In this document: one piece after another, positions 21,154 through 63,626 of the stretch | Layout: every line of letters begins with the position of its first letter | Position numbering within the stretch: the stretch's first letter is position 1 | Source of the DNA: Macrostomum lignano | Taxonomy: Eukaryota | Length of the DNA: 64,000 nt | Reading direction: 5' to 3' | Assembly (NCBI GenBank): GCA_002269645.1 | Contig: NIVC01000309.1 | Span: 62,001 to 126,000, forward strand | Notes under the pieces: generated by a model | Seen by the model: only the letters and a program-made list of their open reading frames with translations | What the model was told of the DNA's origin: nothing | The model's database searches: none | Position numbers and translations under genes: made by a program

Positions 21154-21706
21154 TTATACAAAGTTCACGGATACCAAATTAGTCTTGTCGCCCGCCTGCT
21201 GCCCGCGCTGCTGCCGTCTCAGCAGGCGCTTCCTATGGTGCCTCGGCGCCCAGCGCCCGATGCAGGAGGCCAGATCGTCGTCTGTGGTGGCGCCGGCGCG
21301 CTCCTCCGCCAGCTGCTGCGCCCGCTCCCTCAGCAGGCGAGCTCTGACCGGCCGTCTGGTCACGTAGCGGCTGCCGTCAGCTCGGCGCTTCACCACCCAC
21401 TCCATTGCCGATGCTTCACCACCTGCGGCAGCTGCCGGCTCTTCTGGCAGTGCCGCTGCTGCTGCTGCTGCTGCTGCTGCTGCCGAATGCTCTTGAAGCT
21501 GATGCTGCTGCTCCGGTTGTTGCTGCGGCTCTTCCTCGATTGTCTGGCAGCGGTGCGGCTGCGGCTGCGGCTGTTGGAGCAACTTCGGCGGCGGCGGCGG
21601 CGCCTGCTGCAGGCTGAGCAGATTTGTCTGCGGGTTCAGAGTCAGCTGGGGACCGCCGCGGATGCGGGTGCCCATCCTTGGCACGTTTGGTCTCTGCTGC
21701 TGCAGT

Positions 21707-21748
<42 letters not shown>

Positions 21749-36000: not shown

Positions 36001-39000
36001 CTCTCAAAGGACAGGGGAGAGACTCTCACAGAACAAACTCAACTGAATCTTCAATAATCTGTCGGTAGCTGACTTGGCCCTGTTATCAATGGATAATGGG
36101 ATAATTCTGAGGCAATAAATCCCGAGGCCAAATTACTACTACCCAGCAAGACTAGGCCCTCATTTGTTAGGCTTTAATTTTACGATTATGCTGCTAAAAA
36201 ACCTTAGCGGACCTATCGATGTTAGCTTTGCTTCTTAAACCGAGTTTTACGAGGGCATTATTACCCAGGCCCTCAACCTCTCTCCTGGGGGTGTCAAGTC
36301 ATCTTTCAGCTCTTTATCGCGGTGGAAAGGGAGTGGATAGCGGTTGTTCCCAAAACTGGCCTTTCGAAAGGAGGGGGCACAGATGGCCCGCGGATTTGGG
36401 ATTATCGGGGTGTGCGACTCTGTGTGTCTTTTTGACCCGACGGAGGAGGCGGCATCCTCTGTGATGCGTGTTGGTCCTCCGCTGCCGCCCAAGCCTCGGC
36501 GGCAAACATCAAAGAGAATCGGCGGCGGTCCCTTCCCCCAGCATCTTTCCCTGCCATTGGGCTGGTTCCTCTTCAGCTCGGGCAGCTGCCGGGTCAAAAG
36601 CCAAGGCCCTTTTTGTTTAGGCCATATATCTATCTATTAGTTAGCTTGCATAGCCGGGCTGCTTTAGTTGATGGCTTCACACGCCTGCGACTGTCAGCGC
36701 ATTGCTAAGAGGGTTGGAGGGACATTGCGGACTCTGCCGCGGCCTGGAGCGAATGGAATGCAGAGAATTTCTTTCACCCAGGCCATTGCAACGGTTCTTC
36801 TTCAGCAAGCGGTGTCAGTCATACTCCTGCCGCCTATTAATACTGCCGAATAGCAGAGGGCTGGGCTGGATGCGTGACAAAAAGATTTATAATAAAACTG
36901 TGTAATTATCATTGGGCTCGTTTGAAGCTGTACAGTTTATGGGCATGATGTCGTGGACTTCGTTTTCTACTAGAAGCCTGGACTGGAAGCCAAGGAGAGA
37001 AACTTGAAACTTGAGCAGAATTCGAAATTTCGAAAATAGATTATTTAACTCTCGTAGTGCGTCCAGCCCCAGGCAGATTTTTTCAGGAAACATGGCACCA
37101 GACATGACTGAATCTCTCCCCTGTCCTGTGAGTCTCTTCCCTGTCCTGTGAGAGTCTCTTCCCTGTCCTGTGAGAGTCTCTCCCTTGTCCTGTGAGAGTC
37201 TCTTCCTGTCCTGTGAGTCTCTTCCCTGTCCTGTGAGAGTCTCTCCCTTGTCCTGTGAGAGTCTCTTCCTGTCCTGTGAGTCTCTTCCCTATCCTGTGAG
37301 AGTCTCTCCCTTGTCCTGTGAGAGTCTCTTCCTGTCCCGTGAGTCTCTTCCCTGTCCTGTGAGAGTCTCTCCCCTGTCCTGTGAGAGTCTCTCCCCTGTC
37401 CTTTGAGAGTCTCTCCCCTGTCCTGTGAGAGTCTCTCCCCTGTCCTTTGAGAGTCTCTCCCCTGTCCTGTGAGAGCTCTCCCCTGTCCTGTGAGAGTCTC
37501 TCCCCTGTCCTGTGAGAGTCTCTTCCTGTCCTGTGAGTCTCTTCCCTGTCCTGTGAGAGTCTCTCCCTTGTCCTGTGAGAGTCTCTTCCTGTCCTGTGAG
37601 TCTCTTCCCTGTCCTGTGAGAGTCTCTCCCCTGTCCTGTGAGAGTCTCTCCCCTGTCCTTTGAGAGTCTCTCCCCTGTCCTGTGAGAGTCTCTCCCCTGT
37701 CCTTTGAGAGTTTCTCCCCTGTCCTGTGAGAGTCTCTCCCCTGTCCTGTGAGAGTCTCTTCCTGTCCTGTGAGTCTCTTCCCTGTCCTGTGAGAGTCTCT
37801 CCCTTGTCCTGTGAGAGTCTCTTCCTGTCCTGTGAGTCTCTTCCCTGTCCTGTGAGAGTCTCTCCCCTGTCCTGTGAGAGTCTCTCCCCTGTCCTTTGAG
37901 AGTCTCTCCCCTGTCCTGTGAGAGTCTCTCCCCTGTCCTTTGAGAGTCTCTCCCCTGTCCTGTGAGAGTCTCTTCCCTGTCCTGTGAGAGTCTCTCCCCT
38001 GTCTTGTGAGAGTCTCCCCTGTCTTTCACCTCCTGCTTTCCCACTTGCTCCCTGAAATGTACCGAGATAAAGTTGAAAATCCCATTTAAATGACGACAAC
38101 CTACATTTTTTGTTATTCGTTTCTCCCAGTCCAGGCTGAATCCCAGACATCCGCGGTTCACTTCAAACAGACCGGCAGTGCATCGGGCGAGGAGGGGATT
38201 AAATTAATTTTTTTCGAACTCTTCACCCAGGTTTTTGGTTGATATAAACATTTTCCCAATGCCTCCTAGGGAAGTGATAAACATCCCCACTTTCGAGACA
38301 CAGCTACTGGGCCCTGTAAACTTGCGGTCTCTGGTGATCTATGACTGACTGACTGGCTGGCTCCATGGACTAACCAATGGGGCTTTGTCCTGGGACTGAT
38401 GACACCTGGAACCAATGCTTTGCATCGATTCTGGAAAACGACACATCATCATCATCATCCCACGGGAGTCTGGGACAGAACCGGTCTGTCTAAGAAAATT
38501 GTTTATACAGTCCGCTCAGCTCTGTTTAGCCGCAGAGGGCCATTAAAAGCGGCATCTCCCTTTTCAGTGGCTATGGGAGTTTTGCAACAGTTGAGCCCAC
38601 AGTATGAATGAGATTATGGAGCAAGCCGAGTCAAATAAAATTTTATGGGATGAGATAAAAATAGGGAATAAAACCGCGAGGTAGATATCGGATGGTAGAA
38701 CTGCTACAGGATATCTTGGAAACGTTTTTGTTTACCCGTCATTTTTGCTTAAATTATCATCAATCCACCTCGATCCGCCCCCGATCCGCCCCCGATCCGC
38801 TCCCGATCCGCTCCCAATCCGCTCCCGATCCGCTCCCGATCCCCCCCGATCCGCTCCCGATCCGCTCCCGATCCGCTCCCGATCCGCCCCAGATCCGCTC
38901 TCGATCCGCCCTGATCCGCCCCAGATCCGCTCTCGATCCGCCCTGATCCGCCCCAGATCCGCTCTCGATCCGCCCTGATTCGCCCCCAATCCGCTCCCGA

Positions 39001-42850: not shown

Positions 42851-45800
42851 ATGGCAACGAGTCTCGGCAGTTGGATAAAGGAGAAGTTTAAAAAGGCTGG
42901 GAGCTGCGCCGGTTGCTACAAGCGAATGTACTCTGCCAGCAAGTCCTCAGCAGAATCGGTCAGGCCAGCGGAGCCAGCCGAGATGCAGGAAGCTCAAAAA
43001 GCCAACATCGGCGACACTGACGAAAAGGACGACAAAAGCGACAAGTCGATTTTGATGTCGCTGATGAGCTTCGCAGATTCCACCACTGCTCACGGGTTCT
43101 CTCGGCTGGCCGGCTCCTCAGGTCGAACTGGCAGCGGCCTGTGGCTGCTGTTTCTTCTGGCGGCCTACGCGGGCCTCTGCTACCACACTGCCACGCTGGT
43201 CCTCAAGTTCCAGAGCCACCCGGTGTCCACCAGCCTGATTGCGGAGGTTCCATTCCAGTATCCGGATATCTACCTGTGCAGCGCCAATCCTGTAGGCTAC
43301 AGCCGCATCACCAAGTCCATCCAGAAGACGGCCGACTACGCCTACCTGTACGAGACCAATGTGACGGCTTACAACTTGAAGCTGCAGAGTGACGTCATCA
43401 ACAACAGTGCGGCAGATGTCAGCCTAGGAATCCACACCGCTTGGCTTAACTGGCAGACGGAGATTCTGTCTAGCAGGGTCAATCTGTCGAAAGGTGCGTC
43501 GAATTTTAAAAATTACATTACTGGTTGAGATTGACGAAATATGGAGTTTTTTTTCAAAAAAATCACTTTCCACAAAAATACAGACTTTTTCAACAGCTGC
43601 AGGATCTCTCTGCAAGGGGAAGAGTTCACAGGAAACTACACCACAGCGCTTACCTACAACCAGAGCCTGCAACCGATCCGAGTGCCCTGCGTCACCTGGT
43701 CTGAGGCCCGATCGCTCGTTTGCAACATCTCATCCACCATAGGAAACTTTGTGCCCAACCTGAATCACTCTTCCTGCCTGTACAACTCGAAGTTGGACGT
43801 TTTGATGACAAAGACTGTTCTGGGCAAGTGCAGCTCCTTAAACATGATTCTTAATCTGACGTCCAAGGATGCACTATTACTAAAAATTGCTTTCTGCCTA
43901 AAAACATTTGTAGGTGTTCCAAAATTAGACAGCAACTACACGATTGGCAAAGTAGTGCAAGGTCCGTTCTGCTTCCACAGATCTGGGAGTAGCGACAGCG
44001 GACTGGACATCAACTACTGCGGTGTGCCGTATTGCAGTGAGTTTTCTGTGCTTTTTTTGAGCTGAAAATTTTTCTTGTTTAACAATAGAACTACCAAGGA
44101 GGATTCCTCCTGACAGTGTACTCGTATTTTTGCACCGGAAGGGAGCATGGCTCTCGAAATTCTAAAACACGGGTTGAATTTTTGTTGCGCTCCTTCTGAA
44201 ACATGAATGAAGTCGCCAGCCCTCCAGACGGTCGAGATATTCAACGATTCTGCCAGAAGGTCGGATTTTTCCCATAAGCGCCAGTGTATTCAATACAACC
44301 TGTGCGCCAATTAGCACTGCGCCTCAGTGCAGCCTTGCCAAGCCTCCAAATTTCATGAGCATGTCGACCACATGTGTCTGCATCAGTTCGGACTTCGTTG
44401 GTCGCTGGCCTTCACCCAGACAGAGCTTCTGTCTGTAGACTTTACTAGACTAGATTATACTAGATTAGAACCAGACTAGAATAAGAATAGACTATACTAT
44501 ACTAGACTAGACTAGACTAGACTAGAATTAGACTAGACTAAAATAGAAATAGACTAGAACTAGACTAGACTAGGCTATACTAGACTAGACTAGACTAAAC
44601 TAGACTAGACTAGACTAGACTAGACTAGATTAGAATTAGACTAGACTAAAATAGAAATAGACTAGAACTAGACTAGACTAGGCTATACTAGACTAGACTA
44701 GACTAGACTAGATTAGAATTAGACTAGACTAAAACAGAAATAGACTAGAACTAGACTAGACTAGGCTAGACTAGACTAGACTAGACTAGACTAGACTAGA
44801 CTAGACTAGACTAGAATTAGACTAGACTAAAATAGAAATAGACTAGAACTAGACTAGACTAAGCTATACTAGACTAGACTAGACTAAACTAGACTAGACT
44901 AGACTAGACTAGACTAGATTAGAATTAGACTAGACTAAAATAGAAATAGACTAGAACTAGACTAGACTAGGCTATACTAGACTAGACTAGACTAGACTAG
45001 ATTAGAATTAGACTAGACTAAAACAGAAATAGACTAGAACTAGACTAGACTAGGCTAGACTAGACTAGACTAGACTAGATTAGACTAGACTAGACTAGAC
45101 TAGACTAGACTAGATTAGACTAGACTAGACTAGACTAGATTAGAATTAGACTAGACTAAAATAGAAATAGACTAGAACTAGACTAGACTAAGCTATACTA
45201 GACTAGACTAGACTAGACTAGACTAGACTAGACTAGACTAGATTAGAATTAGACTAGACTAAAATAGAAATAGACTAGAACTAGACTAGACTAGGCTATA
45301 CTAGACTAGACTAGACTAGACTAGATTAGAATTAGACTAGACTAAAACAGAAATAGACTAGAACTAGACTAGACTAGGCTAGACTAGACTAGACTAGACT
45401 AGACTAGACTAGACTAGACTAGACTAGAATTAGACTAGACTAAAATAGAAATAGACTAGAACTAGACTAGACTAAGCTATACTAGACTAGACTAGACTAA
45501 ACTAGACTAGACTAGACTAGACTAGACTAGATTAGAATTAGACTAGACTAAAATAGAAATAGACTAGAACTAGACTAGACTAGGCTATACTAGACTAGAC
45601 TAGACTAGACTAGATTAGAATTAGACTAGACTAAAATAGAAATAGACTAGAACTAGACTAGACTAGGCTATACTAGACTAGACTAGACTAGACTAGACTA
45701 GACTAGACTAGATTAGACTTGACTAGACTAGACTAGATTAGAATTAGACTAGACTAAAATAGAAATAAACTAGAACTAGACTAGATTAGGCTATACTAGA

Positions 45801-48800
45801 CTAGACTAGACTAGACTAGACTAGACTAGACTAGACTAGATTAGACTAGACTAGACTAGACTAGATTTGACTAGACTAGACTAGACTAGATTAGAATTAG
45901 ATAGACTAGACTAGATTAGAATTAGATAGACTAGACTAAAATAGAAATAGACTAGAACTAGACTAGACTAGAAAAGACTATACTAAATTAAAAATAGACT
46001 AGACTAGCGATTTGAAATTCCTACTGTAAAACCTTGCTGCAGGAAAACCCCCATCGGAAAATTCTCACAGACCCTTTCAAACGGTACTCAACCAAAAAGT
46101 TCCTAGAAATTTTCAATCCAGAATTAAAGTACACCCTGTCACGGTTTAGAGTAGAAAACCATAAACTGGTCCGCAAAGCAATCAAGGACTGCGAGACCAA
46201 GGATCCCTTACGAGAACCTACCCAATGTGGGAGTGGAAAGTGAAGTTCACTTCCTGTTAAATTGTAGTTGGAACTTACATAGGGCTCCCTGTGATAAATT
46301 CTTGAATAAACTTTCAAATTAAAAAACGTTACAGCAGACGGCAAAGTATTTTATCTAATAAAAATATAAAAAAATAAAAAATAAAAAAAAAATATTTGAT
46401 TACACTTGCCCCGATTGGGCCAGATGTGTAACCGACAGCTCAGCCGCAGCTATCTGAAGGCTGCGTACGGCTGTTCAGTCCAAGGACTGGGGGGTCGCCA
46501 CACGCACCCTCAATTACCCCAGCTAATGCTGGCACTTATTTTACAGCTGGGTGAACTGAAGCAATGCAGAGTTAAGTGTCTTGCTCGAGGACACTAAGTG
46601 TTCCAGTGAGATTGAGAATCGAACCCCCGACCTTCAAGTCGTGAGTCAGACGCTCTAACCACTTGGCTACAGTCCCCTTTTAGTTAATGACTCAATAAGA
46701 TCGAGACATATTGAAAATTTTAGCTAAGTTCATCAAATACCCGGTAAATGACACAGGCCGGAAGGCAACTGCCCTGAGGCTTTATATTGGTAGAGCAAAA
46801 ATATGCTCGAATTGCTCTGTTAGCGCACGAGATTTCGAAGGCTCCTACACCGCAGCTCCTCAATGAACTGTAAAACCGTCCCGCAGGCAAGGCCGAAAAC
46901 AATCTCGCCGACTGCTCAGCTCGCATCACCAGCGGCAGCTCAATCAGCACAACCTACATGGGCTCAGAGCAGACGTCGCGTTCTGGAAAATCCTGCCGAT
47001 CGTGGGAGGCCCTGGCGAATGGCAGCCTGGCTGCAGAGTTTCAAAATCTGAACTCCAGCTTCGAGTATCGCGTGTTCCTGCCCGACCCAGACTCGGTTGC
47101 CAGCGTTGGCAGCGGCTGTCGGAGCGCAGTCGTGATGTTCAAGGACCCCAGCAGTGGCCTGGGCTGGCAGTCCATCTACAAACTCATCATTGACAGCGAC
47201 GTTGAAAATGAGTCTTGGTGTCTGGTTGCAAAGCCGAATTATAAAAACCTCACGCTTGAGGGCTGCGCTGTTCCTGACTGCTGTGAGTAAGGCGTGGCAA
47301 AGTGGGGAGAGTGAAGTATACTCGTACATTATGCATATGTATACTCGTACTTTGTATAGAATATAGATATATGTCTAACTCGCTGGGCTGTAAACTGCTT
47401 GCATGACTTATTAAACTTATTAAACCTGTCTTACAGCAATGACGCAAGCAGCCTATTCAGCTATGTGTAGTGAGTGAAACAAGGCTAGAGTGCTTGTTGT
47501 AGTCGATAGTTGCCGAAAGCTGGCGATCAGTATGAATAGCGAATAGCGATAGCTGAATAGCGATCAGTATATTTATTGAATTAGTGAGCTGAGTCAGGGT
47601 GGTGGCTAAAGTCACACTATGCACATTTAATACCGTACGCACAAGGGTAGAGCTAGCAAAGTCACGCGGCGCAGCCGCTAACAACTACCCCAACACACAC
47701 GATAGTAGGCGCTGCCTACACTATTTACTAACCGCGGCTAACTTTGCTTAACTTGCAGCGCTAAACTAAACTGAGACTGACGTCCTAATATGAAATTACA
47801 ATGGCATAGAATGTCTACAAACAACATTCTGATTTGAAAACATCCTTTCAGCAACCTCGCTGAAGTGCATCTCAGGCCTGCTGCACCAGAAGTACGGACC
47901 TCACGTGCTCTCCAAGCTGGTCGGCCCGAGCTTGGACGTCACCCTGCTCGACTGCAGCTTCGGTGACAAGAAGTGCACACCGGCTGACTTCACTGCGCTG
48001 CACCATCCCTACTACGGCGCCTGCTACAAGTTCAACAGCGCTCCGTTCCTTCGAGATCTGACGCCGATGCAGCACGGTTTGCGTCCGCTCAGCCTGAAGC
48101 TGTTCGCCGACGATCACGACTACATGGGCAACCGGCGTCCGGACACCTTCACGGCCGTCCGAGCAGTCATGGGCGGCCCGTACAACACCGGAGACGTGAG
48201 CGAGCCGGCAGGTTTTCGCCTGTTCGTGATGCCGCCGGGACAGCATCCAAGCTCCCCGAATGCCATCATCATCTACACTGGGGCCCAGTCAACGGTCCAA
48301 ATTAAATTTGTTGAGAACACGGACCACACAACGAGAGGCCTGTGCAACCCCGTTGAGTCAACCATTGACTACAGCATCCACAGCTGGAGCCCGACTGTAC
48401 GTCGACCGAGGAACGAACAAAACTTCTCGTCACTAGATCCCTACTTTTTGTGAGTCAGACTCACACTTCTGACAAGAAACACTCGTACCATCCGTCAGAC
48501 TCAATCTGAAACACAGTTCTTATCAATTTTGCAAAACTTTAAACTCCAACTTACTCACGAAAATTTCAGTGAGTTCAACAATAGCTGGACGTTTGTAAGC
48601 GACCAGGAGTCTTGCGCCAACCACATTGTTATCGACGAATTTATTAGGAACTGCGGCTGTCTGCCCTACCTGTTGCCAATTCCGACCAAATACAGAAACA
48701 TCCCAGACTGCTTCTATCTGAACAGCTCCGACCCCGCTGGTATTGAAAAGTTGCAGCTGAGCGAGTTCTGCGCGGTCAAACTTTTCACAAGGATGGAGAC

Positions 48801-49962
48801 GCTCATAGAGAAGCATTGGGCTGCGTGCAAGCCCAACTGTCGAAAGCCTCACTACTCGGTGCAGCTGGTGAGCATTCGATGTTGCTTGGCATTGAATTCG
48901 AAAGACAATAATTCAAGAGCTTGGTAGTGAAGTCGTGTGGCTTGGATACGTTTAGATACGCTTGGACTACGATGTGCCCTAACGTCTATGACTCAAATTG
49001 TTACAGTTGTGGTTGCGTCTTGTTCAGGCCACAGATACTAAACTATAATTCGTTATATAGTATCTGTGATTCAGGCTTTTTGTATAGAATAACACGCCAT
49101 TCAATTCACATTCTACGAGCGTATGTTAATCCATCAGCTAGACAAATATACAATCGAGCTCATATTTCCGAAAGTCCGTTCTCTGAGTTAGCTTGTCCAT
49201 GCTACATCCAAGAACTACTTAAGTTGTCCATGCTACATCTACTCTACGTTCAGGATTTTTGGTTCTGCGGTAAAACCCATTGCTGATTTTATCAAATCAA
49301 TTTTTATCGACATTCAACCTTCTAGACGACTCAGCCGTGGCCCGACGCGTCCCATGGTTGCCACCCACTGGTTAAATCCAAGTGGTGACAATTACAAAAT
49401 GTCTATAAGAAGCTTGTTGCGACAACAGAACCAAAATTTGAATACTTCCAGTTGAGAACACCCAGTTATGTTTCCAACCTTCCAGACGACTCAGCCGTGG
49501 CCCGACGCGTCCCACGCCGCTTACAACGCGACGCTGCAGTCGCTCACTTCGCTGATCGGCTTCCCGAAGCAGGTGAGCCCCGACCAGGGCCTGACCATGC
49601 TCTACTACTCCTACCTGCAGGGTGAGCAGCTGATCCAGCCCAGCTCGGTGCAGCGCTTCGGCCAGTCGCTGGCCATGCGAGAGGCGGCTCGCAGCAACCT
49701 GGCCTGGATCCGGGTCGAGGCCGAGTACCCGATCGGGTCCGGCAGCGCCCAGGCCGACGGATATCCGGTGGAGAATCTGCTGGCCGAGATGGGCGGCATT
49801 CTGGGTCTGTACTGCGGCGTCTCGGTGCTGACCATCTGCGAGCTGATGGACCTGGTGGGCCGCCTGCTGCACCGGGCCGCACTGCGATCGCTTCGAGGAA
49901 GACAAGTTGACAGCATCGGTGACTCGTCGAGTAATTCGAAAGTCGCTTCAACCACAGTTTAG
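42851..49962 (+). CDS. DEG/ENaC channel subunit 1 with two kringle domains, ~924 aa: join(42851..43493, 43584..43823, 43914..44036, 46887..47282, 47852..48449, 48570..48867, 49486..49962)
   Basis: FADSTTAHGF (HG motif) + TM1; FQYPDIYLCSANP; LLDCSFGDKKC...DF...HPYYGACYKFN; Cys-rich thumb (SCANH..NCGCLPYLLP..CKPNCRKPHY); TM2 LLAEMGGILGLYCGVSVLTICEL. Exons 2-4 encode kringles. Phases are consistent (2775 nt = 925 codons); intron 2 is GC-AG. Confidence 0.9.
44444..46006. repeat. (CTAGA)n microsatellite with higher-order variant cassettes, in channel 1 intron 3
   Basis: Direct reading; the cassette CTAAAATAGAAATAGACTAGAACTAG...GGCTATACTAG recurs. Confidence 0.97.
46396..46677 (-). mobile_element. 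tRNA-derived SINE with a CORE/Meta-like central domain
   Basis: Minus strand: GGGGACTGTAGCCAAGTGG (A box), GGTTCGATTC (B box), then GTGTCCTCGAGCAAGACACTTAAC...CAGTTCACCCAGCTGTAAAAT, resembling recalled conserved SINE central domains. Confidence 0.8.
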
Positions 49963-51018
49963 CGACCGTATACCGAGATCCCGAAAACTCTGGGTTTGGG
50001 CCATAGACTCTACCGGGTAGCTGCTGCCAGTGCTTGAGAGCATTAGAAGCTACTGTCTATGGCCTTAACACCGCGGGGTTTTTCCTCTGCGACCTCGGAT
50101 GACCCTCAGAAAATAGCACGAGAGCGTCAAGGTGAAATCAAGCAACAACTGTACAAATTTCCCTAAAGGCATCTTGCTTTTGTATTGTAGCTAAACTTTG
50201 ATTCTTTGATTGAAGTTTGTGACATTTGAGTTATGAATCAAACTCAACTTTTTTGTACATTGTACGTGTTGTAATTAGCACCTAATTTGTAATTGCACTT
50301 ATTTCCGTTTTTTTTAAATTGCTTAAGAAAACTAAAGAATCCAAGTAAAATATGTATTATTCTTAGCTGCTATTTGAAATCACATATACAGGACAGCAAC
50401 TTTTGTGATCGTTTGCAATTTTTTATAAGCTGCCTTCTTGAGTTTTGCTGCGCGATATGCTTAATCAAACTTTTAATTGCTTTTGTCTTGCCTAGAAATG
50501 TGCTAAATATTTTAATTGTTGTTGTAAAATAAACTAGCTACGCAAAAATGTGTATTCCTGGCATATTGTTCGTAAACAATATAATATTGACTACTAGAAA
50601 AGTTCTTTAATAATTTGATTGTCGTTAACTTGATCAATGAAAGAAAATTCCGGGTGATAATGTAGAAATTGGCGGGCTCTATGTTGGGGACAGGCTGGGT
50701 GTTTGAGCTGAGCAGAATGTCTATGGTAGAACGCTTCATTTTGTTTCTGATTCGCTGATGGAGTTCAGTGTTGATTAGGAGTTGTCAAAAAATGAAGCGG
50801 ACTTTTTGGGTACACATAATGATGGTAAAATGATGGAAAAAATAAATTCTATCAATGCTCTTCTATCAACTAACGACAACTAACGGAATTTTCCAGCCAA
50901 ATTGAGCCTTGCAATTGAGTAGTTGAAGACTTGCTGTTCATTGTCTATTTGAAAAATTCTAAAATATGTGATCCTATTTTAGTATCATAGCTAGTTCCTA
51001 ATCAGCTTAGTCTCGTTA

Positions 51019-53276
51019 ATCAGCTAGTATCAGCTAGTATCAGCTAGTATCAGCTAGTATCAGCTAGTATCAGCTAGTATCAGCTAGTATCAGCTAGTAT
51101 CAGCTAGTATCAGCTAGTATCAGCTAGTATCAGCTAGTATCGGCTAGTATCAGCTAGTATCGGCTAGTATCAGCTAGTATCAGCTAGTATCAGCTAGTAT
51201 CAGCTAGTATCAGCTAGTATCAGTTAGTATCAGCTAGTATCAGCTAGTATCAGCTAGTATCAGCTAGTATCAGCTAGTATCAGCTAGTATCAGCTAGTAT
51301 CAGCTAGTATCAGCTAGTATCAGTTAGTATCAGCTAGTATCAGCTAGTATCAGTTAGTATCAGCTAGTATCAGCTAGTATCAGCTGGTATCAGCTGGTAT
51401 CAGCTAGTATCAGCTAGTATCAGCTAGTATCAGCTAGTATCAGTTAGTATCAGCTAGTATCAGCTAGTATCAGCTGGTATCAGCTGGTATCAGCTAGTAT
51501 CAGCTAGTATCAGCTAGTATCAGCTAGTATCAGTTAGTATCAGCTAGTATCAGCTAGTATCAGTTAGTATCAGCTAGTATCAGCTAGTATCAGCTAGTAT
51601 CAGCTAGTATCAGCTAGTATCAGCTAGTATCAGCTAGTATCAGCTAGTATCAGCTAGTATCAGCTAGCATCAGCTAGTATCAGCTAGTATCAGCTAGTAT
51701 CAGCTAATATCAGCTAGTATCAGCTAGCATCAGCTAGCATCAGCTAGTATCAGCTAGTATCAGCTAATATCAGCTAGTATCAGCTAGTATCAGCTAGTAT
51801 CAGCTAATATCAGCTAGTATCAGCTAGTATCAGCTAGTATCGGCTAGTATCAGCTAGTATCAGCTAGTATCAGCTAGTATCAGCTAGTATCAGCTAGTAT
51901 CAGCTAGTATCAGCTAGTATCAGCTAGTATCAGCTAGTATCAGCTAGTATCAGCTAGTATCAGCTAGTATCGGCTAGTATCAGCTAGTATCAGCTAGTAT
52001 CAGCTAGTATCAGCTAGTATCAGCTAGTATCAGCTAGTATCAGCTGGTATCAGCTAGTATCAGCTAGTATCAGCTAGTATCAGCTAGTATCAGCTAGTAT
52101 CAGCTAATATCAGCTAGTATCAGCTAGCATCAGCTAGTATCAGCTAGTATCAGCTAGTATCAGCTAATATCAGCTAGTATCAGCTAGTATCAGCTAGTAT
52201 CAGCTAGTATCAGCTAGTATCGGCTAGTATCAGCTAGTATCAGCTAGTATCAGCTAGTATCAGCTAGTATCAGCTAGTATCGGCTAGTATCAGCTAGTAT
52301 CAGCTAGTATCAGCTAGTATCAGCTAGTATCAGCTAGTATCAGCTAGTATCGGCTAGTATCAGCTAGTATCAGCTAGTATCAGCTAGTATCAGCTAGTAT
52401 CAGCTAGTATCAGCTAGTATCAGCTAGTATCAGCTAGTATCAGCTAGTATCAGCTAGTATCAGCTAGTATCGGCTAGTATCAGCTAGTATCAGCTAGTAT
52501 CAGCTAGTATCAGCTAGTATCAGCTAGTATCAGCTAGTATCAGCTAGTATCAGCTAGTATCAGCTAGTATCAGCTGGTATCAGCTGGTATCAGCTAGTAT
52601 CAGTTAGTATCAGCTAGTATCAGCTAGTATCAGTTAGTATCAGCTAGTATCAGCTAGTATCAGCTAGTATCAGCTAGTATCAGCTAGTATCGGCTAGTAT
52701 CAGCTAGTATCAGCTAGTATCAGCTAGTATCAGCTAGTATCGGCTAGTATCAGCTAGTATCAGCTAGTATCAGCTAGTATCAGCTAGTATCAGCTAGTAT
52801 CAGCTAGTATCAGCTAGTATCAGCTAGTATCAGCTAGTATCAGCTAGTATCAGCTAGTATCAGCTAGTATCGGCTAGTATCAGCTAGTATCAGCTAGTAT
52901 CAGCTAGTATCAGCTAGTATCAGCTAGTATCAGCTAGTATCAGCTAGTATCAGCTAGTATCAGTTAGTATCAGCTAGTATCAGTTAGTATCAGCTAGTAT
53001 CAGCTAATATCAGTTAGTATCAGCTAGCATCAGCTAGTATCGGCTAGTATCAGCTAGTATCAGCTAGTATCAGCTAGTATCGGCTAGTATCAGCTAGTAT
53101 CAGCTAGTATCAGCTAGTATCGGCTAGTATCAGCTAGTATCAGCTAGTATCGGCTAGTATCAGCTAGTATCAGCTAGTATCAGCTAGTATCAGCTAGTAT
53201 CAGCTAGTATCAGCTAGTATCAGCTAGTATCAGCTAGTATCAGCTAGTATCAGCTAGTATCAGCTAGTATCAGCTA
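51019..53276. repeat. 10-bp satellite (ATCAGCTAGT)n, ~2.25 kb, between channel genes 1 and 2
   Basis: Direct reading. Confidence 0.98.
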
Positions 53277-53894
53277 AAGTCCAAAGTAAAACAGTCCAGC
53301 TACATTCCAAAGCCACGATCTACAACAATAGCCAGGGAGAATCAAATGGATTACAATTCGCCAGAGTCAGAGTAAAGGATGCTCAAGAGTCCTTGTAGCA
53401 TCCAAATTGTGGCCGCAACGCTGATTTATTAATAAAATGAAGCCATAAGCCCACTCATCAGAAACCTTTCCAAGAATAAACAATCGATGCTGAAAATATG
53501 AAGAGACAAAATTGGCACATAACGAATTAATTGACATTGTCACCCTGACGAAGAGGAAGTACGTGCCCCATGAAAATCAACTTCTCCCATTATTGACGCT
53601 CCTAGGAGTAACCGGCCCTGCTGGTATGAAAAAATTCTATCAGGAAGAGAGGAGGGGGGAGAATCATAACTGTAATTTATGCACCTCTCCTTTCCCCAGT
53701 GTGTTCGCCGTCGCTTTTCAACTTCTCTCTCAGTGATTAACTATTCCGGTTGCCAATGACAACTCTTCAAACAATTGGGCAACGGCAGAGAGAGGGCATT
53801 TAAAACGGGTACCAGGAGCCAGACTGCTGCAGCACAAACATAGAAGAAAGCAAGGGAGCCCCTGTCTGAGTCTGCAAACTTCAGTGAGGCAGCG

Positions 53895-56800
53895 ATGTCT
53901 GATAAAAAAATGAGCAAAGAAGAAGAAGTCCATCAAGACAACCGAGACGAAAACGACGAGGAACGCAAAGCGTCGGTCTCGGTGTCGCTGTTGAGCTTCG
54001 CAGATTCCACCACTGCTCACGGGTTCTCTCGGCTGGCCGGCTCCTCAGGTCGAACTGGCAGCGGCCTGTGGCTGCTGTTTCTGCTGGCGGCCTACGCGGG
54101 CCTCTGCTACCACACCGCCACGCTGGTCCTCAAGTTCCAGAGCCACCCGGTGTCCACCAGCCTGATTGCGGAGGTTCCATTCCAGTATCCGGACATCTAC
54201 CTGTGCAGCGCCAATCCTGTAGGCTACAGCCGCATCACCAAGTCCATCCAGAAGACGGCCGACTACGCCTACCTGTACGAGACCAATGTGACGGCTTACA
54301 ACTTGAAGCTGCAGAGTGACGTCATTAACAACAGTGCGGCGGATGTCAGCCTAGGAATCCACACTGCTTGGCTTAACTGGCAGTCACTAATTCTATCTAC
54401 CAGGGTTAACATGTCACCGGGTGAGGCAGTGCTTTGGTTGTTCATTGTATGCCATTTTCACTGAAGATTACACTATTCATTCAGGCAGTTTAACAGTTTG
54501 ATTGATGCACCTTGAAGATGTTGATTTGATCTCGTGGTGCACGAAAGTAAGAATTCATCATTTAAAGACAATTATTACTCATGTTGTCAATTGGTAGCTT
54601 TTGATTTAAGTTGCTACTTATTGCAAAACCAAAAACATTGCACCTGATCGTGCTAAAATTGTCTGATTTACAGTGGGTAAAATGTTAGTTTTCCAAGTAA
54701 ATAATTTGATTCAATCAGTTCCGCACGCTTCCTTGTTTGAGCAGCTTGAGCCATAGGGGCTGAGCACACTGCTTGTTGAGTGATCTGTTGACGCTTAAAA
54801 AACTAAATTTGCAGGGCTACCTGCAGAGGGGAGCATAATTTCTGCTACAGTTTTTTGGTCTCAAGCGAACAGGAAATTTCAACTCACAGCAGATGCGATT
54901 AACAGTAGTTAAGGTCCGACTGTGAATTTTTCATAAAGTTTGCCGGGCGCTACCCAAAAAGTTTTCGATGTCTTATTCAAACTAGAAGAGGTCTCAGGAA
55001 AGTCTGCTCAGCCCGTACCTTGCCTAAAAAGTCAAGTTGTTTGTCAAAGTTCTTATGCTACTTTCTGCTGCATTACATTTCAAATTTGACTTATTAATAA
55101 CTTACTAAACAGAGTTGCGTCTCCTTACTTTGAGCACAATACCATAGCATATTGGGTTTCACTAGATCAAGCATCTATATACCTGCAGACCTCCTCAACA
55201 GCTGTCGGATCTCTCTGCATGGCCAGGAGTTCACAGGAAATTACACCACAGCGCTAGCCTACAACCAGAGCCTGCAGCCGGTCCGAATGCCCTGCGTCAC
55301 CTGGTCGGAGGCCCGATCGCTCCTGATCAATATTTCATCCTATATTGGCAACCTGGTGCCCGACCTCAGCCACTCCTCGTGTCTGCACAACTCCAGTGTA
55401 AACATCTCGCTGATCAAGGCTGTGTTAGGCAAGTTCTTAAGCTAAAGTTTCTGTTATTTGTTCGTTAAAAATGCTCCGATTCAATAATTAGCGATCAGAA
55501 ATTCAATCGAATCACACAGGCTCCTACGACGGTGACCAGAGTAGCTACACCATTGGCAGAGTCTTTCAAGGCCCGTTCTGCTTTCACAGATCCGCTAACA
55601 GCAGCAGTGGACTGGACATCAACTACTGCGGCGTGCCGTATTGCAGTGAGTTGCTAACTGGATAATCTGCCTGAAGCTTGCATGGCTTCCTATGAAATTG
55701 CAGTGGTAGCCTGTGAGTTTCTCTAGCTTAGTTTCTTAAACAATGACAAATGGCTCTCAGTAGTAATCAAATGGCCAGGTGCAGCAGTTCCCATGTCTAT
55801 AATTCAGATGCAGATTCAAGTGTAGATTAGTTGGATTTCATTCTCGCAAATACAGATGCTATGAACTCTTATACCCGGATATCCTTGACTTGCGCAGACA
55901 AGGCCAACAACACTCTATCCGGCTGCACCTCATTCAACTCGAACATATCCGTGAACACGGTTTTCATGGGCAGCGTGAGGACGTCACGATCCGGCAGAAC
56001 CTGTCAGCCCTGGCAAGCCCTGGTTAACGGCAGTCTCAGCACACAGTTCCGCAACCTCGATCCGGTCATGGAGTTCCGCGTGTTCCTGCCCGACCCTGAA
56101 TCTGTTGCGAATGTTGGAAGCGATTGCCGCAGCGCCGCAGTGATGTACAGGGACCCCAGAAAGGGACTGGGCTGGCGACCCATCACTGAGCTCATCATTG
56201 ATGGACAGGTGACCCAAGAGCCTTGGTGTCTAGTTGAGAAGCCAGGCTACAAGAATCTGACAATGGAGAGCTGCAGCGTGCCCGACTGCTGTGAGTTCCT
56301 AATGACTATTTTAAAGGGACAGCACGGTCCTCATATTCTAAAAGTACGTAGAAAAACTTACTTTTTAAAAATCCAAATTGCAGCATCTTCGCTGAAGTGC
56401 ATCTCAGGCCTGCTGCACCAGAAGTACGGACCTCACGTGCTCTCCAAGCTGGTCGGTCCGAGCTTGGACGTCACCCTGCTCGACTGCAGCTTCGGTGACA
56501 AGAAGTGCACACCGGCTGACTTCACTGCGCTGCACCATCCCTACTACGGCGCCTGCTACAAGTTCAACAGCGCTCCGTTCCTTCGAGATCTGACGCCGAT
56601 GCAGCACGGTTTGCGTCCGCTCAGCCTGAAGCTGTTCGCCGATGATCACGACTACCTGGGCAACCGGCGTCCGGACACCTTCACGGCCGTCCGAGCAGTC
56701 ATGGGCGGCCCGTACAATCTCGGAGAGGCGAGTGACCCGGCTGGATTCAACTTGATCCTGATGCCGCCGGGAGCGTATCCGGGCACCTCACATGCCATTC

Positions 56801-59643
56801 CAATTTACACGGGGGCTCGGTCCACTGTTCGTATGAGCTACTTCGAGGACACGGACAACACAACAAGAGGTTTTTGCAACCCTCTGAAGTCAAGCACCAA
56901 CTACAGTATCTACAGCTGGAGCCCGACTGTGCTTCGACCGAGATACGAGCAGAGCTTTTCGATGCTGGATCCGTACTTTTTGTGAGTTTGGGCAACTTTT
57001 GCTCTAAAAATGTTATTTTTGAGTCATTGCTGGTAAAAAACCTACCGTGTAAATGTAAAAAGCCGTTTTACTTTTTATATGTTGTGAGATTGTATTTCCG
57101 TTGATTTGTTTAAAAAATGAAAATGCAAATTCTTTCTTTTCGCAAATGATATCGATATCGCTTTTGACGAGCTAAATGGGAATTTGGACAATCAAAACGG
57201 GACGCAATAGACATTCAAGCCAGGCCAGAGACTACACAACCATAGAATGTGAAATGGACAATCAAAATGAAAAAAAGCCATTCAAAACGCGAATTCGCCC
57301 AATGTAATGTATTTTTTATATCTCGGGCCACTGGAATATTTAAAAGTGAAGAAAGTGCTACAGGAATTGGTGGCGCCATTGAATGGGATCGCTTTCAGGC
57401 CAAAGACGAGCAAGCAGGGGATGGAGGGACAGAGAGCTATAAAATCTCAGTCCAATTCCCGTTTTGAATCACTTTTTACCATATTGAAGGTCCAAAGTTA
57501 TAGTCTATGGCCAAGCCTCCCTCAGTAGACTCTGCTAAACTGTTTAAGTCCATGACTAGGGTGTGATCTGTGGCCTGGCTTGAATGTCTATGGCGTCCCG
57601 TTTTGATTGTCCAAATTCCCATTTATATCGCCAAAAGCGATAATACGAAGCTCATTGTCTAGCAATTTGACGATCATTGTTTATTTGTTACAATATCGCT
57701 TACAATAGTCGTTTTTAATCACTGCCTTCAACTTTCTACTTCGACATTCCAGCGAATTCAACAGCAGCAGCTGGGTCTTCGACGACAACCAGGAGTCTTG
57801 CGCCAATCTCGCCGTTGTCGAAGAGTTCGTTGGAAAGTGCGGCTGCCTGCCGTATCCGCTGCCAATTCCGACAAAGTACATCAACATTCCCGACTGCTTT
57901 ACTTTGGAGAACTCCAGTTCAGCCGGCATCGACCAGCTGTTGACAACCGAGGCCTGTGCCATAAACTTGTTCAACCAGTTTGAGACGCTCACTGAAACCT
58001 TCTGGGCGAAGTGCAGGCCGAACTGCAGAAAGCCAAAATACTTGACGCAGCTGGTGAGTCAGGCTTAAGACCAGTTGCCCAGAGATTCTAACAAGAAAGA
58101 AACAAACAAGAAAGCAACTGACGAGGTGACTAGGTAGTGTATAGGTTTTTTTAGGTAATTATTTTTACTATGGTGCTTTCAATAATTTGATATGACTTGG
58201 CCTTTTCTTATAACCCTGTTGATATTCGTAGAGCCTTTGTTTAAAAACTCAGGGTTCTCTGTTAATTCAAAATTCCACATGCATGTCCGGTGCCTAAAAA
58301 TCATAAAATTGGCATACGATCGTATATTAGCCTTTTGTTCTAAACGAAAAGCTCTACGAATATCGATAGAGCTACAAGAAAGGCAAATCATGTCAAAAGA
58401 TGAACTTCGGGTCTGCTTCCAATAAAAATCAATTACAATTTTTTGTGCTGAAAAAATTAAATCCTCCATTCTCCGTAATGTTTTTTTCGGTAAAACCTGC
58501 CTCTTGAACATCTCCTTCTTCTCCATCTCGTCCTTCTACTTGAGAATTTACACTTATAACTAGATGATTGATGAATGCTTCGTGTTAAGACTGACCAAGG
58601 TAAGAAAGAACTTTTGAGTCAAGAATCGCTTGAGAAGTTTGTTTAACGTCACGAACATCAAACAATACGTGTTCGACATTCATTTCAGTGCAAAAGTGCA
58701 TTCTTACTTTGACTTAGCACCAGGGGGTTCTGGGAATCCGGATACAGCGGGGAGGCGTTGTCGCCCATTCCGCTAACCCCTGGCAACCACAGGCAGCTGG
58801 TGCTGCGGTGTCGCGCAGGGAGATCCGGTTGTGCCGGTGTTCGCTGCGCGGTCCCCCTCCGGTCCCCTCGCTCGCCCGGCTGCCCTAGGCTAGCGGATGA
58901 GCTGGCAGAGATTCTCGGGCCTGAAAACGGGTCGAGGTAGATGAGCCTGTCCTGAGTAGAGGCGGGGCATTCTCAGATGAAGTGCTCTGCATTTTCAACA
59001 ATGGAAAGGCGCTAGGAGGGCGCTAGCACACTTCTCCCTGTGCTTGGTTGCCACCTACTGGTTAAATCCAAGTGGTGACAATTACAAAATGTCTATAAGA
59101 AGCTTGTTGCGACAACAGAACCAAATTTTGAGTATTTCCAGCTGAGAACAACTAGTTTTGTTTCCAACCTTCCAGACGACTCAGCCGTGGCCCGACGCGT
59201 CCCACGCCGCTTACAACGCGACGCTGCAGTCGCTCACTTCGCTGGTCGGCTTCCCGAAGCAGGTGAGCCCCGACCAGGGCCTGGCCATGCTCTACTACTC
59301 CTACCTGCAGGGTGAGCAGCTGATCCAGCCCAGCTCGGTGAAGCGCTTCAGCCAGTCGCTGGCCATGCGAGAGGCGGCTCGCAGCAACCTGGCCTGGATC
59401 CGGGTCGAGGCCGAGTACCCGATCGGGTCCGGCAGCGCCCAGGCCGACGGATATCCGGTGGAGAATCTGCTGGCCGAGATGGGCGGCATTCTGGGTCTGT
59501 ACTGCGGCGTCTCGGTGCTGACCATCTGCGAGCTGATGGACCTGGTGGGCCGCCTGCTGCACCGTGCCGCGCTGCGGTGGATGCGCCGCAGTCAGGTTGG
59601 CAGCTCCAACGCCAAGCTGAAGGAGCCGTCAACGAATTTATAG
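53895..59643 (+). CDS. DEG/ENaC channel subunit 2 with two kringle domains, ~883 aa: join(53895..54420, 55189..55428, 55520..55645, 55898..56290, 56384..56981, 57753..58053, 59176..59643)
   Basis: Same motifs and exon structure as gene 1. Phases are consistent (2652 nt = 884 codons); intron 2 donor AG|GCAAGT; ends EPSTNL. Confidence 0.9.
57158..57640. mobile_element. TA-flanked MITE (Tc1/mariner-like) with ~82-bp imperfect TIRs, in channel 2 intron 5
   Basis: TCGCTTTTG...AAATGGGAATTTGGACAATCAAAACGGGACGC.ATAGACATTCAAGCCAGGCCA (57158-57240) matches the reverse complement of 57559-57640. TA at 57156-57157 and 57641-57642. Confidence 0.85.
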
Positions 59644-60497
59644 CAATCAGATGCTATCAAAACTCGGTAGCATCAGCTATGAAGACTAAAGATGCGTGTA
59701 TTTTTTTTCATTCTAACCCCTCTTTTCTTCTCACTCGCACGTCGAGGTATAACATTTTAACCAACGTGAATCCAGCACTTTTAAGCTGACTATCTGATTT
59801 CACAAGCATGTGATCATGTATCTCGTCTATAACATTTTCACCGGTACTCGTAACGGATCTAGAAGTTACCATTGCATCAGGTTTTAATATTCGCATTCTA
59901 CAGTAAATTATTTGAGTGCCTATGATCTGTTGCCGAGGGGCTTCATGAGTTTGTGGGCTTTGCGTGGATGCGCTTTGCATGTTTGTGCTGTGTCACCTTT
60001 GCCATAACCTTATAAAGAAACTTGATTTTTCTGCCCGAAGCCGCACCTGTCAGTTACTGATTGCTATAAAACTTCTTCTTTGCTTGTATGATTGCACTAT
60101 ACAACTAGGAAGATGCGTAAAATAAAGGAACAAACATTCTCTTTGAATAAAATTATCGTTTGGTGTATTAGCTACTGGGCACCGATCTCAAATATGCTGC
60201 AAATGCTTATCCAGCTATTCTAAAGCTACTATAGAGCTTTGCATAGATTTAGTGGGATGGAAGAAGTTCGTGGGGGGGGGGCATTGGGAAAGCTAAGGCC
60301 AATGAAAAAGGAAACCAGCTCTTGTGTTTTCTTCCCTCAGCATCTCTGTGGGACTTACAAGCGGCTACACTATTCTGTAGTCAATGGCAACCAGCCGCCT
60401 ACTCAACTTTGGCTCCTAAATAAAGGATAAATTTAAGAGTTAGCCCCCGCCGTCGAAAGGCCCCTCACCGAAAAAGTAAAGCAATAAAAGCATCGAA

Positions 60498-62541
60498 ATG
60501 AGAGAAGATAAAATGCCAGACACGCCTCAAGTTGAGAATAGCGGCAAACAACGAAGCGATTCCTCAGAAGCCGACAAGACAGACGAACGCGACGCGTCGG
60601 TCTCGGTGTCGCTGCTGAGCTTCGCAGATTCCACCACTGCTCACGGGTTCTCTCGGCTGGCCGGCTCCTCAGGTCGAACTGGCAGCGGCCTGTGGCTGCT
60701 GTTTCTGCTGGCGGCCTACGCGGGCCTCTGCTACCACACTGCCACGCTGGTCCTCAAGTTCCAGAGCCACCCGGTGTCCACCAGCCTGATTGCGGAGGTT
60801 CCATTCCAGTATCCGGATATCTACCTGTGCAGCGCCAATCCTGTAGGCTACAGCCGCATCACCAAGTCCATCCAGAAGACGGCCGACTACGCCTACCTGT
60901 ACGAGACCAACGTGACAGCTTACAACTTGAAGCTGCAATTCGATGTTGAAAACAATTCGGCTGCTGAAGTAAGCCGGGGAATATATACTGGTTGGTTGAA
61001 CTGGCAGTCAGTGATATTGTCCAGCAAGATTGACTCGGCTCGAGGTAAGGGTACAGAATTTGTGTCTTTATACGTAGTACTCATAGCATATTGCAGTCAG
61101 TTTAAGCTTGGAAGCAGTTGACTTTATTCCAGAGTGGCGGAAATTTATAGTACACGCATACAATAGAACAATATAGAACACTGGAATGGCTACATGTAGT
61201 TCAGGATTAATGAAAAGTTCACAAAATAAAATTCAGTCTGCAAAGGTATCTGATCACTGATCCTTCTCTATGCTTCTCTATACTTCATACCTATCTTCCT
61301 CTTCCAAGCTCATGTCGGTCCTTTTTGTCGGTACTTCCTAGAAGGATAAAAAGGTCTTGAAGACGCAGGAGATTGAGCAACAACAGGTCTGTACTGCCCT
61401 GTTCGGGGTCGATGATTAGCATTTGGTAGCTACGGAAAGGATTTTGTTATGGCTCCACCAGTCCAACCTTTGGGCCATAGACTATAGATAGCAATAGTAG
61501 AGAGTAGCGTTTTGTCTCTCTGGATTAAAGTGAACTCCTTCTTGCTCCTTAAATTGTAGCTCGTAACATGTAACACATTGTGCCCTAACTTGCATGTACA
61601 GAGGACTATGTTTATAGATCAATGTTCATAGAGAAGGGCCTAGCCTACACTAATAAACGCAGTAACTTTAGATAAAACTTTCAAAGGAAAAACTTTATGA
61701 TGTTTACCAAAGAATACTGAGGTTACAATGGGATAAACGGAACAACAGATCACACAAAGTGCGCCAAGTGTAACCTTTTTTATACAAAAATGTTCCTCGA
61801 AATACATGAAAAAAAATTTATGTTTCACATTTATCGTCATTACTATATTTTGCAGACCTTCTGAACAGCTGTCGGATCTCTCTGCATGGCCAGGAGTTCA
61901 CAGGAAACTACACCACAGCGCTCACCTACAACCAGAGCTTGCAGCCGGTCCGAGTGCCCTGCCTCACCTGGTCGGAGGCCCGATTGCTTGTGAACAATAT
62001 TTCATCCGCCATTGGCAATCTGGTGCCCAAACTGAATCACTCTTCGTGCGTCTACAACTCCAGTCTAAACATCTCGCTGATCAAGGATGTGTTAGGTAAG
62101 TTCCGTTTCTCTGGAAATGTTCAAAGTCCAAGAACACCGGGCGGCTTTTACAGAAGCAGTCAACATCGCTTTAGTTGGTTTGCTCAAAGGCTTTAAACAA
62201 CTGATTTCCTATTACTTCAACGTCCCGCTCTTCTGATGCTAATTATCGGCAGTGGCAACAGGCTAATTAATATTTGATTTTGTTTCATATGCTCACCTTC
62301 TTGTCATTTGGCAGTCTCTTTTTCAACCCCAATCTCGCTTCTCCACTGCATCGCTTTGTCACACAACTAAAAAAATTCTGCGCTCTCATTCACAGTAAGA
62401 AAACGTTTACATTCTCAGGTTCCAGCATCTCAGACAACAGCTACATCATTGGCAGCGTGCTGCAAGGCCCGCTCTGCTTCCACAGATCTGCCAGCAGCGG
62501 CAGCGGACTGGACATCAACTACTGCGGCGTTCCGTATTGCA
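60498..62541 (+). CDS. DEG/ENaC channel subunit 3, 5' part only (N-terminus, TM1, first kringle): join(60498..61044, 61856..62095, 62419..62541); expected to continue beyond the window
   Basis: Homologous to exons 1-3 of genes 1 and 2 with the same phases. Exon 4 is not found before 64000. Confidence 0.85.
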
Positions 62542-62715: not shown

Positions 62716-63626
62716 GTGTGTCAAACCATAGACAATGTGTGTCAAAGTGTGTCAAACCATAGACAATGTGTGTCAAAGTGTGTCAAACCATAGACAATAT
62801 GTGTCAAAGTGTGTCAAACCATAGACAATGTGTGTCAAAGTGTGTCAAACCATAGACAATGTGTGTCAAAGTATGTCAAACCATAGACAATGTGTGTCAA
62901 AGTATGTCAAACCATAGACAATGTGTGTCAAAGTGTGTCAAACCATAGACAATTTGTGTCAAAGTGTGTCAAACCATAGACAATGTGTGTCAAAGTGTGT
63001 CAAACCATAGACAATGTGTGTCAAAGTGTGTCAAACCATAGACAATGTGTGTCAAAGTGTGTCAAACCATAGACAATTTGTGTCAAAGTGTGTCAAACCA
63101 TAGACAATATGTGTCAAAGTGTGTCAAACCATAGACAATGTGTGTCAAAGTGTGTCAAACCATAGACAATGTGTGTCAAAGTGTGTCAAACCATAGACAA
63201 TGTGTGTCAAAGTGTGTCAAACCATAGACAATGTGTGTCAAAGTGTGTCAAACCATAGACAATGTGTGTCAAAGTGTGTCAAACCATAGACAATGTGTGT
63301 CAAAGTGTGTCAAACCATAGACAATGTGTGTCAAAGTGTGTCAAACCATAGACAATGTGTGTCAAAGTGTGTCAAACCATAGACAATGTGTGTCAAAGTG
63401 TGTCAAACCATAGACAATGTGTGTCAAAGTGTGTCAAACCATAGACAATGTGTGTCAAAGTGTGTCAAACCATAGACAATGTGTGTCAAAGTGTGTCAAA
63501 CCATAGACAATGTGTGTCAAAGTGTGTCAAACCATAGACAATGTGTGTCAAAGTGTGTCAAACCATAGACAATTTGTGTCAAAGTGTGTCAAACCATAGA
63601 CAATGTGTGTCAAAGTGTGTCAAACC
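62716..63626. repeat. 31-bp minisatellite (CCATAGACAATGTGTGTCAAAGTGTGTCAAA)
   Basis: Visible periodicity. Confidence 0.97.

Follow-up and report, generated by a model that had tools for sequence, protein, structure and literature searches.

Three tandem paralogues predicted to encode DEG/ENaC channel subunits, here termed genes A, B and C, occupy the last third (42.8–62.5 kb) of a 64,000-nucleotide stretch of the genome of the flatworm Macrostomum lignano (GenBank assembly GCA_002269645.1, contig NIVC01000309.1, positions 62,001–126,000). We refer to this entire stretch as the window. The genes, all on the + strand, are mosaics: three short tracts, which include the first and second transmembrane segments (TM1 and TM2) and the ectodomain core, are nearly identical between paralogues, while the rest of the coding sequence and the introns have diverged. 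We read the mosaic as the product of recent interlocus (non-allelic) gene conversion between old tandem duplicates, with a probability of roughly 85%.

The tracts were delimited by self-BLAST and pairwise alignments; tracts 2 and 3 were scored for A versus B, gene C being truncated there by the window end. Tract 1 showed 6 differences between A and B in 392 bp (98.5% identity). Against C, A differed at 3 of 322 bp (A 43065–43386) and B at 4 of 322 bp over the same stretch. Both 3′ edges were abrupt, C falling to 60% identity with A past 43386, and A to 62% with B past 43456; on the 5′ side, B–C identity extended ∼20 bp beyond that of A. In tract 2 there were exactly 3 differences in 329 bp, followed by 73 (72% identity) in the next 264 bp of exon 5. 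Tract 3 contained 14 differences in 530 bp, 8 of them in 129 bp of intron (94% identity) and the other 6 in 401 bp of exon; the 214 bp around TM2 (49661–49874) had none at all, and identity dropped to 55% directly past the tract. Apart from tract 3, the introns of A and B gave no BLAST match to each other. Replacement differences between A and B within the tracts numbered one in exon 1, two in exon 5 and four in exon 7. The original prediction, made from the sequence letters, had described all three tracts, and we recovered each within a few bases, including its 329-bp exon 5 tract with three differences and an abrupt end, and its TM2 exon with ∼130 bp of upstream intron. Its description of tract 1 as differing by a few synonymous changes was right as to the near-identity; the single replacement between A and B shows that the changes are not all synonymous.

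Silent sites carry the case. Synonymous and nonsynonymous divergence (dS and dN) were estimated for A versus B by the Nei-Gojobori method. Tract dS was 0.038, 0.052 and 0.029 for tracts 1, 2 and 3, tract 1 spanning 0.04–0.08 overall. Outside the tracts it was 0.80 in exon 2, 0.86 in exon 3, 1.46 in exon 4, 0.99 in the remainder of exon 5 and 1.73 in exon 6. A uniform dS along the genes, which had been named in advance as evidence against conversion, is far from what was found. Among four-fold degenerate sites encoding the same amino acid in A and B, 7/203 differed within the tracts versus 69/148 outside (Fisher p = 1.9e-23). Identical four-fold sites formed runs of up to 74, compared with a maximum of 59 in 20,000 permutations, and the three longest runs together reached 152 against a permuted maximum of 95; this was an in-house permutation test of the GENECONV type, not GENECONV itself. 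The identity at silent sites and in the intron portion of tract 3 is not explained by protein constraint, as had been proposed, and gene conversion is therefore the best reading.

Conflicting trees point the same way. Site patterns in exons 2–3 favored the grouping (A,(B,C)), with counts of 48 for BC|A, 25 for AC|B and 16 for AB|C. In the 70 bp at 43387–43456 the signal switched to AB|C (23, versus 0 for AC|B and 1 for BC|A; Fisher p = 1.3e-12 against exons 2–3). This switch, together with the longer 5′ identity of B and C, indicates at least two distinct exchange events within exon 1. The tracts also had a raised GC content at third codon positions (GC3), 0.84 (0.77–0.91) versus 0.67–0.70 outside (p = 8e-9), which is compatible with GC-biased gene conversion and is no proof of it.

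Intron 6 of gene A holds a relic of a splice junction: a second exon 7 acceptor region, with TAG in place of CAG, that runs into a copy of the exon's first 31 nt (Table 1). It has 2 mismatches in 44 positions against both A 49473–49516 and B 59163–59206. Its 3′ end is the exact start of A–B homology, that is, the 5′ edge of tract 3, and the sequence upstream is not alignable with B. The relic appears to mark the point at which a B-like segment was pasted into A at the DNA level, which would explain why tract 3 contains intron sequence. It also suggests a polarity, for tract 3 only, in which A received sequence from a B-like donor. Such a junction is hard to reconcile with selection or with assembly error, and seldom can the joining of an ectopic repair be seen so directly. 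A simple local insertion was considered as its origin and rejected, given that the sequence upstream of the relic does not align with B. If the relic's TAG acceptor were spliced to, a stop would follow after ∼20 codons (49313–49390) and the product would lack TM2; it could be an isoform prone to nonsense-mediated decay.

Table 1. Coordinates of the paralogous channel genes, their near-identical tracts and associated features (positions in the window)
Feature	Position	Strand	Content	Counterpart or basis
Gene A	42851–49962	+	DEG/ENaC subunit, 924 aa, 7 exons	closed frame, splice sites, Pfam ASC E = 8e-47
Gene A exons	42851–43493, 43584–43823, 43914–44036, 46887–47282, 47852–48449, 48570–48867, 49486–49962	+		
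Gene B	53895–59643	+	DEG/ENaC subunit, 883 aa, 7 exons	
Gene B exons	53895–54420, 55189–55428, 55520–55645, 55898–56290, 56384–56981, 57753–58053, 59176–59643	+		
Gene C	60498–62541	+	exons 1–3 only (60498–61044, 61856–62095, 62419–62541), remainder past window end	
Tract 1 in A	43065–43456	+	HG motif, TM1, proximal ectodomain	vs B 53992–54383; first 322 bp vs C 60616–60937
Tract 1 in B	53992–54383	+		alignment
Tract 1 in C	60616–60937	+		alignment
Tract 2 in A	47857–48185	+	5′ half of exon 5, ASC ectodomain core	vs B 56389–56717
Tract 2 in B	56389–56717	+		alignment
Tract 3 in A	49357–49886	+	last 129 bp of intron 6, exon 7 through TM2, first cytoplasmic residues	vs B 59047–59576
Tract 3 in B	59047–59576	+		alignment
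Relic	49313–49356	+	extra exon 7 acceptor region (TAG for CAG) and first 31 nt of exon 7	gene A intron 6
Kringle-like module, exon 4	A 46887–47282 (B 55898–56290)	+	six invariant Cys, enlarged loops	in diverged region

We propose the following history. A, B and C would be ancient tandem duplicates whose silent sites have come near to saturation and whose introns can no longer be aligned. At least three segments of 320–530 bp would then have been overwritten recently, a break in one copy being repaired from the template of a neighboring paralogue. Exon 1 would have been homogenized among all three genes, with an additional 70 bp common to A and B only, and the 5′ half of exon 5 and the TM2 exon between A and B. 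For tract 3, a B-like segment beginning 129 bp inside the intron would have been joined past nucleotide 31 of A's former exon 7, so that the previous acceptor and the start of the exon now lie within the intron; A's former intron 6 would have ended at the relic. The left junction of this paste would be non-homologous and the right one homologous, near 49886, as might result from one-sided invasion or from synthesis-dependent strand annealing with end joining. Conversion needs long near-identity, and would recur only where protein constraint or earlier conversion had preserved it, ending at loops that vary across the family. The tract ends do coincide with gapped, variable parts of the family alignment. 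Selection for a common pore and assembly core may add to this process and would not be required. Two other routes to a mosaic were rejected: conversion through cDNA, by the intron in tract 3 and by the ends of tracts 1 and 2 inside exons; and unequal crossing-over, by the intragenic position of both edges of each tract.

Several points weigh against this account. Outside the tracts dS is near saturation, so its ratios are approximate. The rise in GC3 could partly reflect codon or amino acid usage in conserved domains, since the first and second codon positions of exon 7 are likewise somewhat richer in GC. The relic is only 2/44 off the present exon start, which means that exon 7 of A was already B-like before the last event. 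Such similarity requires repeated conversion, or else a separate local duplication as the origin of the relic; we infer that exon 7 had been homogenized earlier and that conversion was recurrent. Our comparison is confined to paralogues of a single species, M. lignano. Some polishing-driven homogenization inside the tracts may also have occurred, the sequence being known from the assembly alone.

A stronger version of gene conversion, put forward in the original prediction, is a selected constant/variable design: conversion would be kept because it provides an identical core for the pore and for assembly, for example into heterotrimers, and the kringle, thumb and termini would be driven apart by selection. 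The location of the tracts, spanning HG–TM1, the ectodomain core and the pre-TM2/TM2 region, is what such a design would call for. These regions form the pore and the subunit contacts in solved DEG/ENaC trimers (ASIC and ENaC structures). Tract 1 is moreover common to all three genes, and the 214 bp around TM2 lack any difference. Against it, dN/dS in the variable exons was 0.16–0.24, which is purifying selection on old divergence, with no measurable diversifying selection at this resolution, and the proposed diversification of sensor domains finds no support in the data. Family-wide, the tracts are only marginally better conserved than exons 2, 3 and 6: identity to the distant paralogues P0004, P0151 and P0155 was 27–32% in the tracts versus 14–35% elsewhere. 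Tract 3, with its stretch of intron and the relic at its edge, indicates that a repair event, not domain borders, set its extent, and conversion limited by homology gives the same picture equally well. We consider the design unlikely. More doubtful still is its fullest form, in which A, B and C would co-assemble, selection would keep conversion so as to maintain one TM1/TM2 pore and core interface, and the kringle-like, thumb and cytoplasmic parts would confer specificity for ligands or partners. If it were true, the locus would be a combinatorial sensor array on a shared chassis, with kringle modules (WSC modules in relatives) recruited as extracellular binding domains.

The mosaic might instead be read in reverse, A and B being very recent duplicates whose diverged exons and introns were imported from distant paralogues, of which a family with many M. 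lignano relatives could offer a supply. We find this improbable: several long events would have had to replace ∼80% of each gene, and with it every intron, the introns differing in length and in repeat arrays; database searches gave only A-, B- and C-type sequences closely similar to these exons; and the relic suggests that the tract was the inserted piece. An artefact of assembly or polishing, with reads of one paralogue correcting another or copies partly collapsed, seems marginally less credible again. In its favor, the genomes of M. lignano are rich in repeats and show recent duplication, and the window is crowded with minisatellites. Yet the tracts keep 3–14 private differences, replacements among them, and cross-mapping is unable to turn 72% identity into 99%. 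Examples of the private differences lie at 43156, 43189, 43267, 47925, 48111, 48124, 49555, 49594, 49651 and 49660. Independently built UniProt models of A, B and C type repeat the tract residues and the type-specific break points at the protein level, down to the diagnostic Leu of B in DYLGN, and the relic junction is a biological footprint. Least probable of all is constraint at the nucleotide level, in which silent sites would be fixed by an RNA element overlapping the genes, by a splicing code or by an extreme bias in codon usage. The very high tract GC3 and the alternative frames open across tract 1 would suit it, but such frames are to be expected where coding sequence is GC-rich. No known form of constraint resembles a dS that drops 20- to 40-fold, with step-like edges, at three separate sites; one tract enters an intron; Rfam, scanned over the whole window, gave no family that could explain intronic conservation; and the tree conflict in exon 1 would be left unexplained.

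Interlocus gene conversion is itself ordinary and well understood. Conversion between tandem duplicates that leaves ‘islands of divergence’ has been described for GOT1 paralogues in Tigriopus (PMC3728101), interlocus conversion for Caenorhabditis paralogues (PMC3966223) and long-lasting conversion for mammalian gene pairs (PMC2720389). Like those cases, A, B and C are closely spaced, share one orientation and combine near-identity of silent sites in short tracts with divergence elsewhere, abrupt edges, trees that conflict along the gene, and raised tract GC. They differ from those cases in belonging to the DEG/ENaC family and to a free-living flatworm, and in the relic acceptor and exon start of gene A, from which a junction and a probable polarity can be read for tract 3. 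The searched literature yielded no report of gene conversion in the DEG/ENaC family; the process is thus known, and the family and host are new as far as that literature goes. In the clustered protocadherins, as Noonan et al. reportedly found in 2004, conversion homogenizes some ectodomain and cytoplasmic segments, and others stay diverse. The likeness lies in region-restricted homogenization among tandem paralogues of membrane proteins, interpreted in terms of constant and variable portions; unlike the protocadherin clusters, the locus described here has only three genes, no shared constant exons and no sign of diversifying selection on the variable parts. For practical purposes, the tracts will mislead flatworm DEG/ENaC trees and the dating of duplications unless masked, and whole-gene identity blends two histories, one with dS of ∼0.04 and the other with dS of ∼1.

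Assignment to the DEG/ENaC family follows from profile matches and motifs in the predicted proteins. Gene A protein matched Pfam ASC (PF00858, the amiloride-sensitive sodium channel family) at 160.7 bits (cut-off 23.6; E value in Table 1) with a match that spans the protein, and the exon open reading frames (ORFs) also matched this profile. FaNaC, ENaC and ASIC were the best PDB matches of the channel proteins. The HG motif before TM1 (TTAHGF) and the G/S-x-S motif in TM2 (LYCGVSVLT) can be read directly in all copies. The labels ‘palm’ and ‘thumb’, taken from alignment to the ASC profile, are plausible. Like known DEG/ENaC channels (FaNaC, ENaC, ASIC and BASIC/ASIC5; PDB 7yvb, 9blr, 6wth, 6ave, 9mky), A, B and C share the protein-spanning ASC domain, the HG motif, a G-x-S (GVS) in TM2 and a Cys-rich region preceding TM2. 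Unlike them, they have ∼290 extra residues, encoded by exons 2–4, at the site of the finger region. These residues comprise two six-Cys modules, of which the second is kringle-like.

The family is large in M. lignano, with 252 library matches at E ≤ 1e-3, five of which reach 1e-10. Beyond the A, B and C types, the next relatives were ∼40% identical over exon 1 and 14–35% identical across segments. The more distant members P0002, P0004, P0005 and P0151 have 1,000–1,360 aa, with a WSC domain (PF01822) as part of their ectodomain insertion; this domain is absent from A, B and C. The P0004 gene, at L001 (NIVC01000440.1, 477451–512859; GCA_002269645.1), spans 15.4 kb with no adjoining paralogue.

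The kringle-bearing architecture is less expected than the conversion. Exon 4, which encodes the second of the six-Cys modules, diverges strongly between A and B (dN 0.30 against the dS given above). Pfam Kringle (PF00051) scored below its gathering cut-off on this module (21.8 and 21.6 bits versus 34.3; E = 2.5e-4), the alignment being restricted to the first 25 positions of the module (profile positions 7–32 of 79), and scans of the whole protein gave no Pfam Kringle match at E ≤ 0.01. We built an exon 4 family profile from A, B and four distant relatives and searched PDB with it. All 60 of the 60 matches listed were kringles, with a best E value of 8.7e-8 and tPA kringle 2 at 9e-6. They included kringles of HGF, tPA (K2), ROR1/2, plasminogen, prothrombin and apo(a), and both the N- and C-terminal motifs aligned. 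The module resembles kringles such as those of plasminogen, tPA, HGF, ROR1/2 and prothrombin in its YxGxxxxTxSGxxCxxW start, NFCR-like center, PxC and CxIPxC end, and in having six invariant Cys in kringle order; it is unlike canonical kringles in its much longer Cys2–Cys3 and Cys3–Cys4 loops. An AlphaFold2 model from a two-sequence alignment was too poor for use (mean predicted confidence, pLDDT, 42.8). The module of exons 2–3 has a similar six-Cys layout by eye and gave no kringle match in the PDB profile search. Thus of the ‘kringle exons’ of the original prediction, exon 4 is supported as kringle-like by the profile search and exons 2–3 are not. We found no description of kringle-bearing DEG/ENaC channels in the searched literature, only automatic database labels. 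The subfamily that these genes document, DEG/ENaC channels whose ectodomain carries a kringle-like insertion, is a candidate for new gating ligands.

Exon models for the three genes combined reading frames, splice sites and paralogue alignments. Start-to-start spacing is 11.0 kb from A to B and 6.6 kb from B to C, and tblastn found no additional paralogue in positions 1–42000 of the window. All introns are GT-AG except for a GC-AG intron following exon 2 in A and B. This intron 2 lies at 43824–43913 in A, 55429–55519 in B and 62096–62418 in C; its donor is GT in C and GC (G|GCAAGT) in the other two genes. The gene A copy has 90 bp, keeps the frame and contains no stop, making the junction of exons 2 and 3 the least certain of the model; UniProt model P0165 reads through this intron, and P0001 takes a different junction. 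Otherwise the gene A junctions match M. lignano UniProt models P0001, P0165 and P0164, and those of gene B match P0163 and P0168. By type, P0165, P0166 and P0164 are A-type, P0163 and P0168 are B-type and P0167 is C-type. The M. lignano entry A0A1I8G9S9 is almost the same as the N-terminal half of the gene A protein; exon 1 of gene B, the query that found it, matched it at 87% identity. The A-type protein models P0001, P0165 and P0166 differ slightly from one another, suggesting that gene A had further copies, allelic or homeologous, in the earlier M. lignano assembly.

Minisatellites are very dense in the window, with more than 17 arrays of 4- to 56-bp units, at 2125–39863, 44436–46007, 51019–53276 and 62716–63626. 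The arrays differ between the introns of the paralogues: gene A intron 3 holds a 1.57-kb (TAGAC)n array, and gene C intron 3 a 31-bp unit repeated 29 times. Between genes A and B there is a 10-bp unit repeated 226 times. Farther upstream, one 22-bp unit forms two opposed arrays ∼1 kb apart (33132–36035 and 37113–38023), a large interrupted palindrome.

Other coding features lie in the upstream part of the window. A single 661-aa ORF on the − strand (15286–17268) encodes a predicted furin-like proprotein convertase, with an S8 pro-domain, a Peptidase_S8 domain (E = 6e-50) and a P domain. ENaC-type channels are known protease targets; this ORF is ∼26 kb upstream of the channel genes, and nothing here connects the two. 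Also on the − strand, an ORF at 21157–22254 contains a PDZ domain (E = 4.5e-11) and adjoins long low-complexity frames rich in Ala, Arg and Pro. Perfect 137-bp inverted repeats at 1122–1258 and 1909–2045 flank an ORF (1315–1734) with a weak DDE_3 transposase match, and the whole (1122–2045) is probably the remnant of a small Tc1/mariner-type element.

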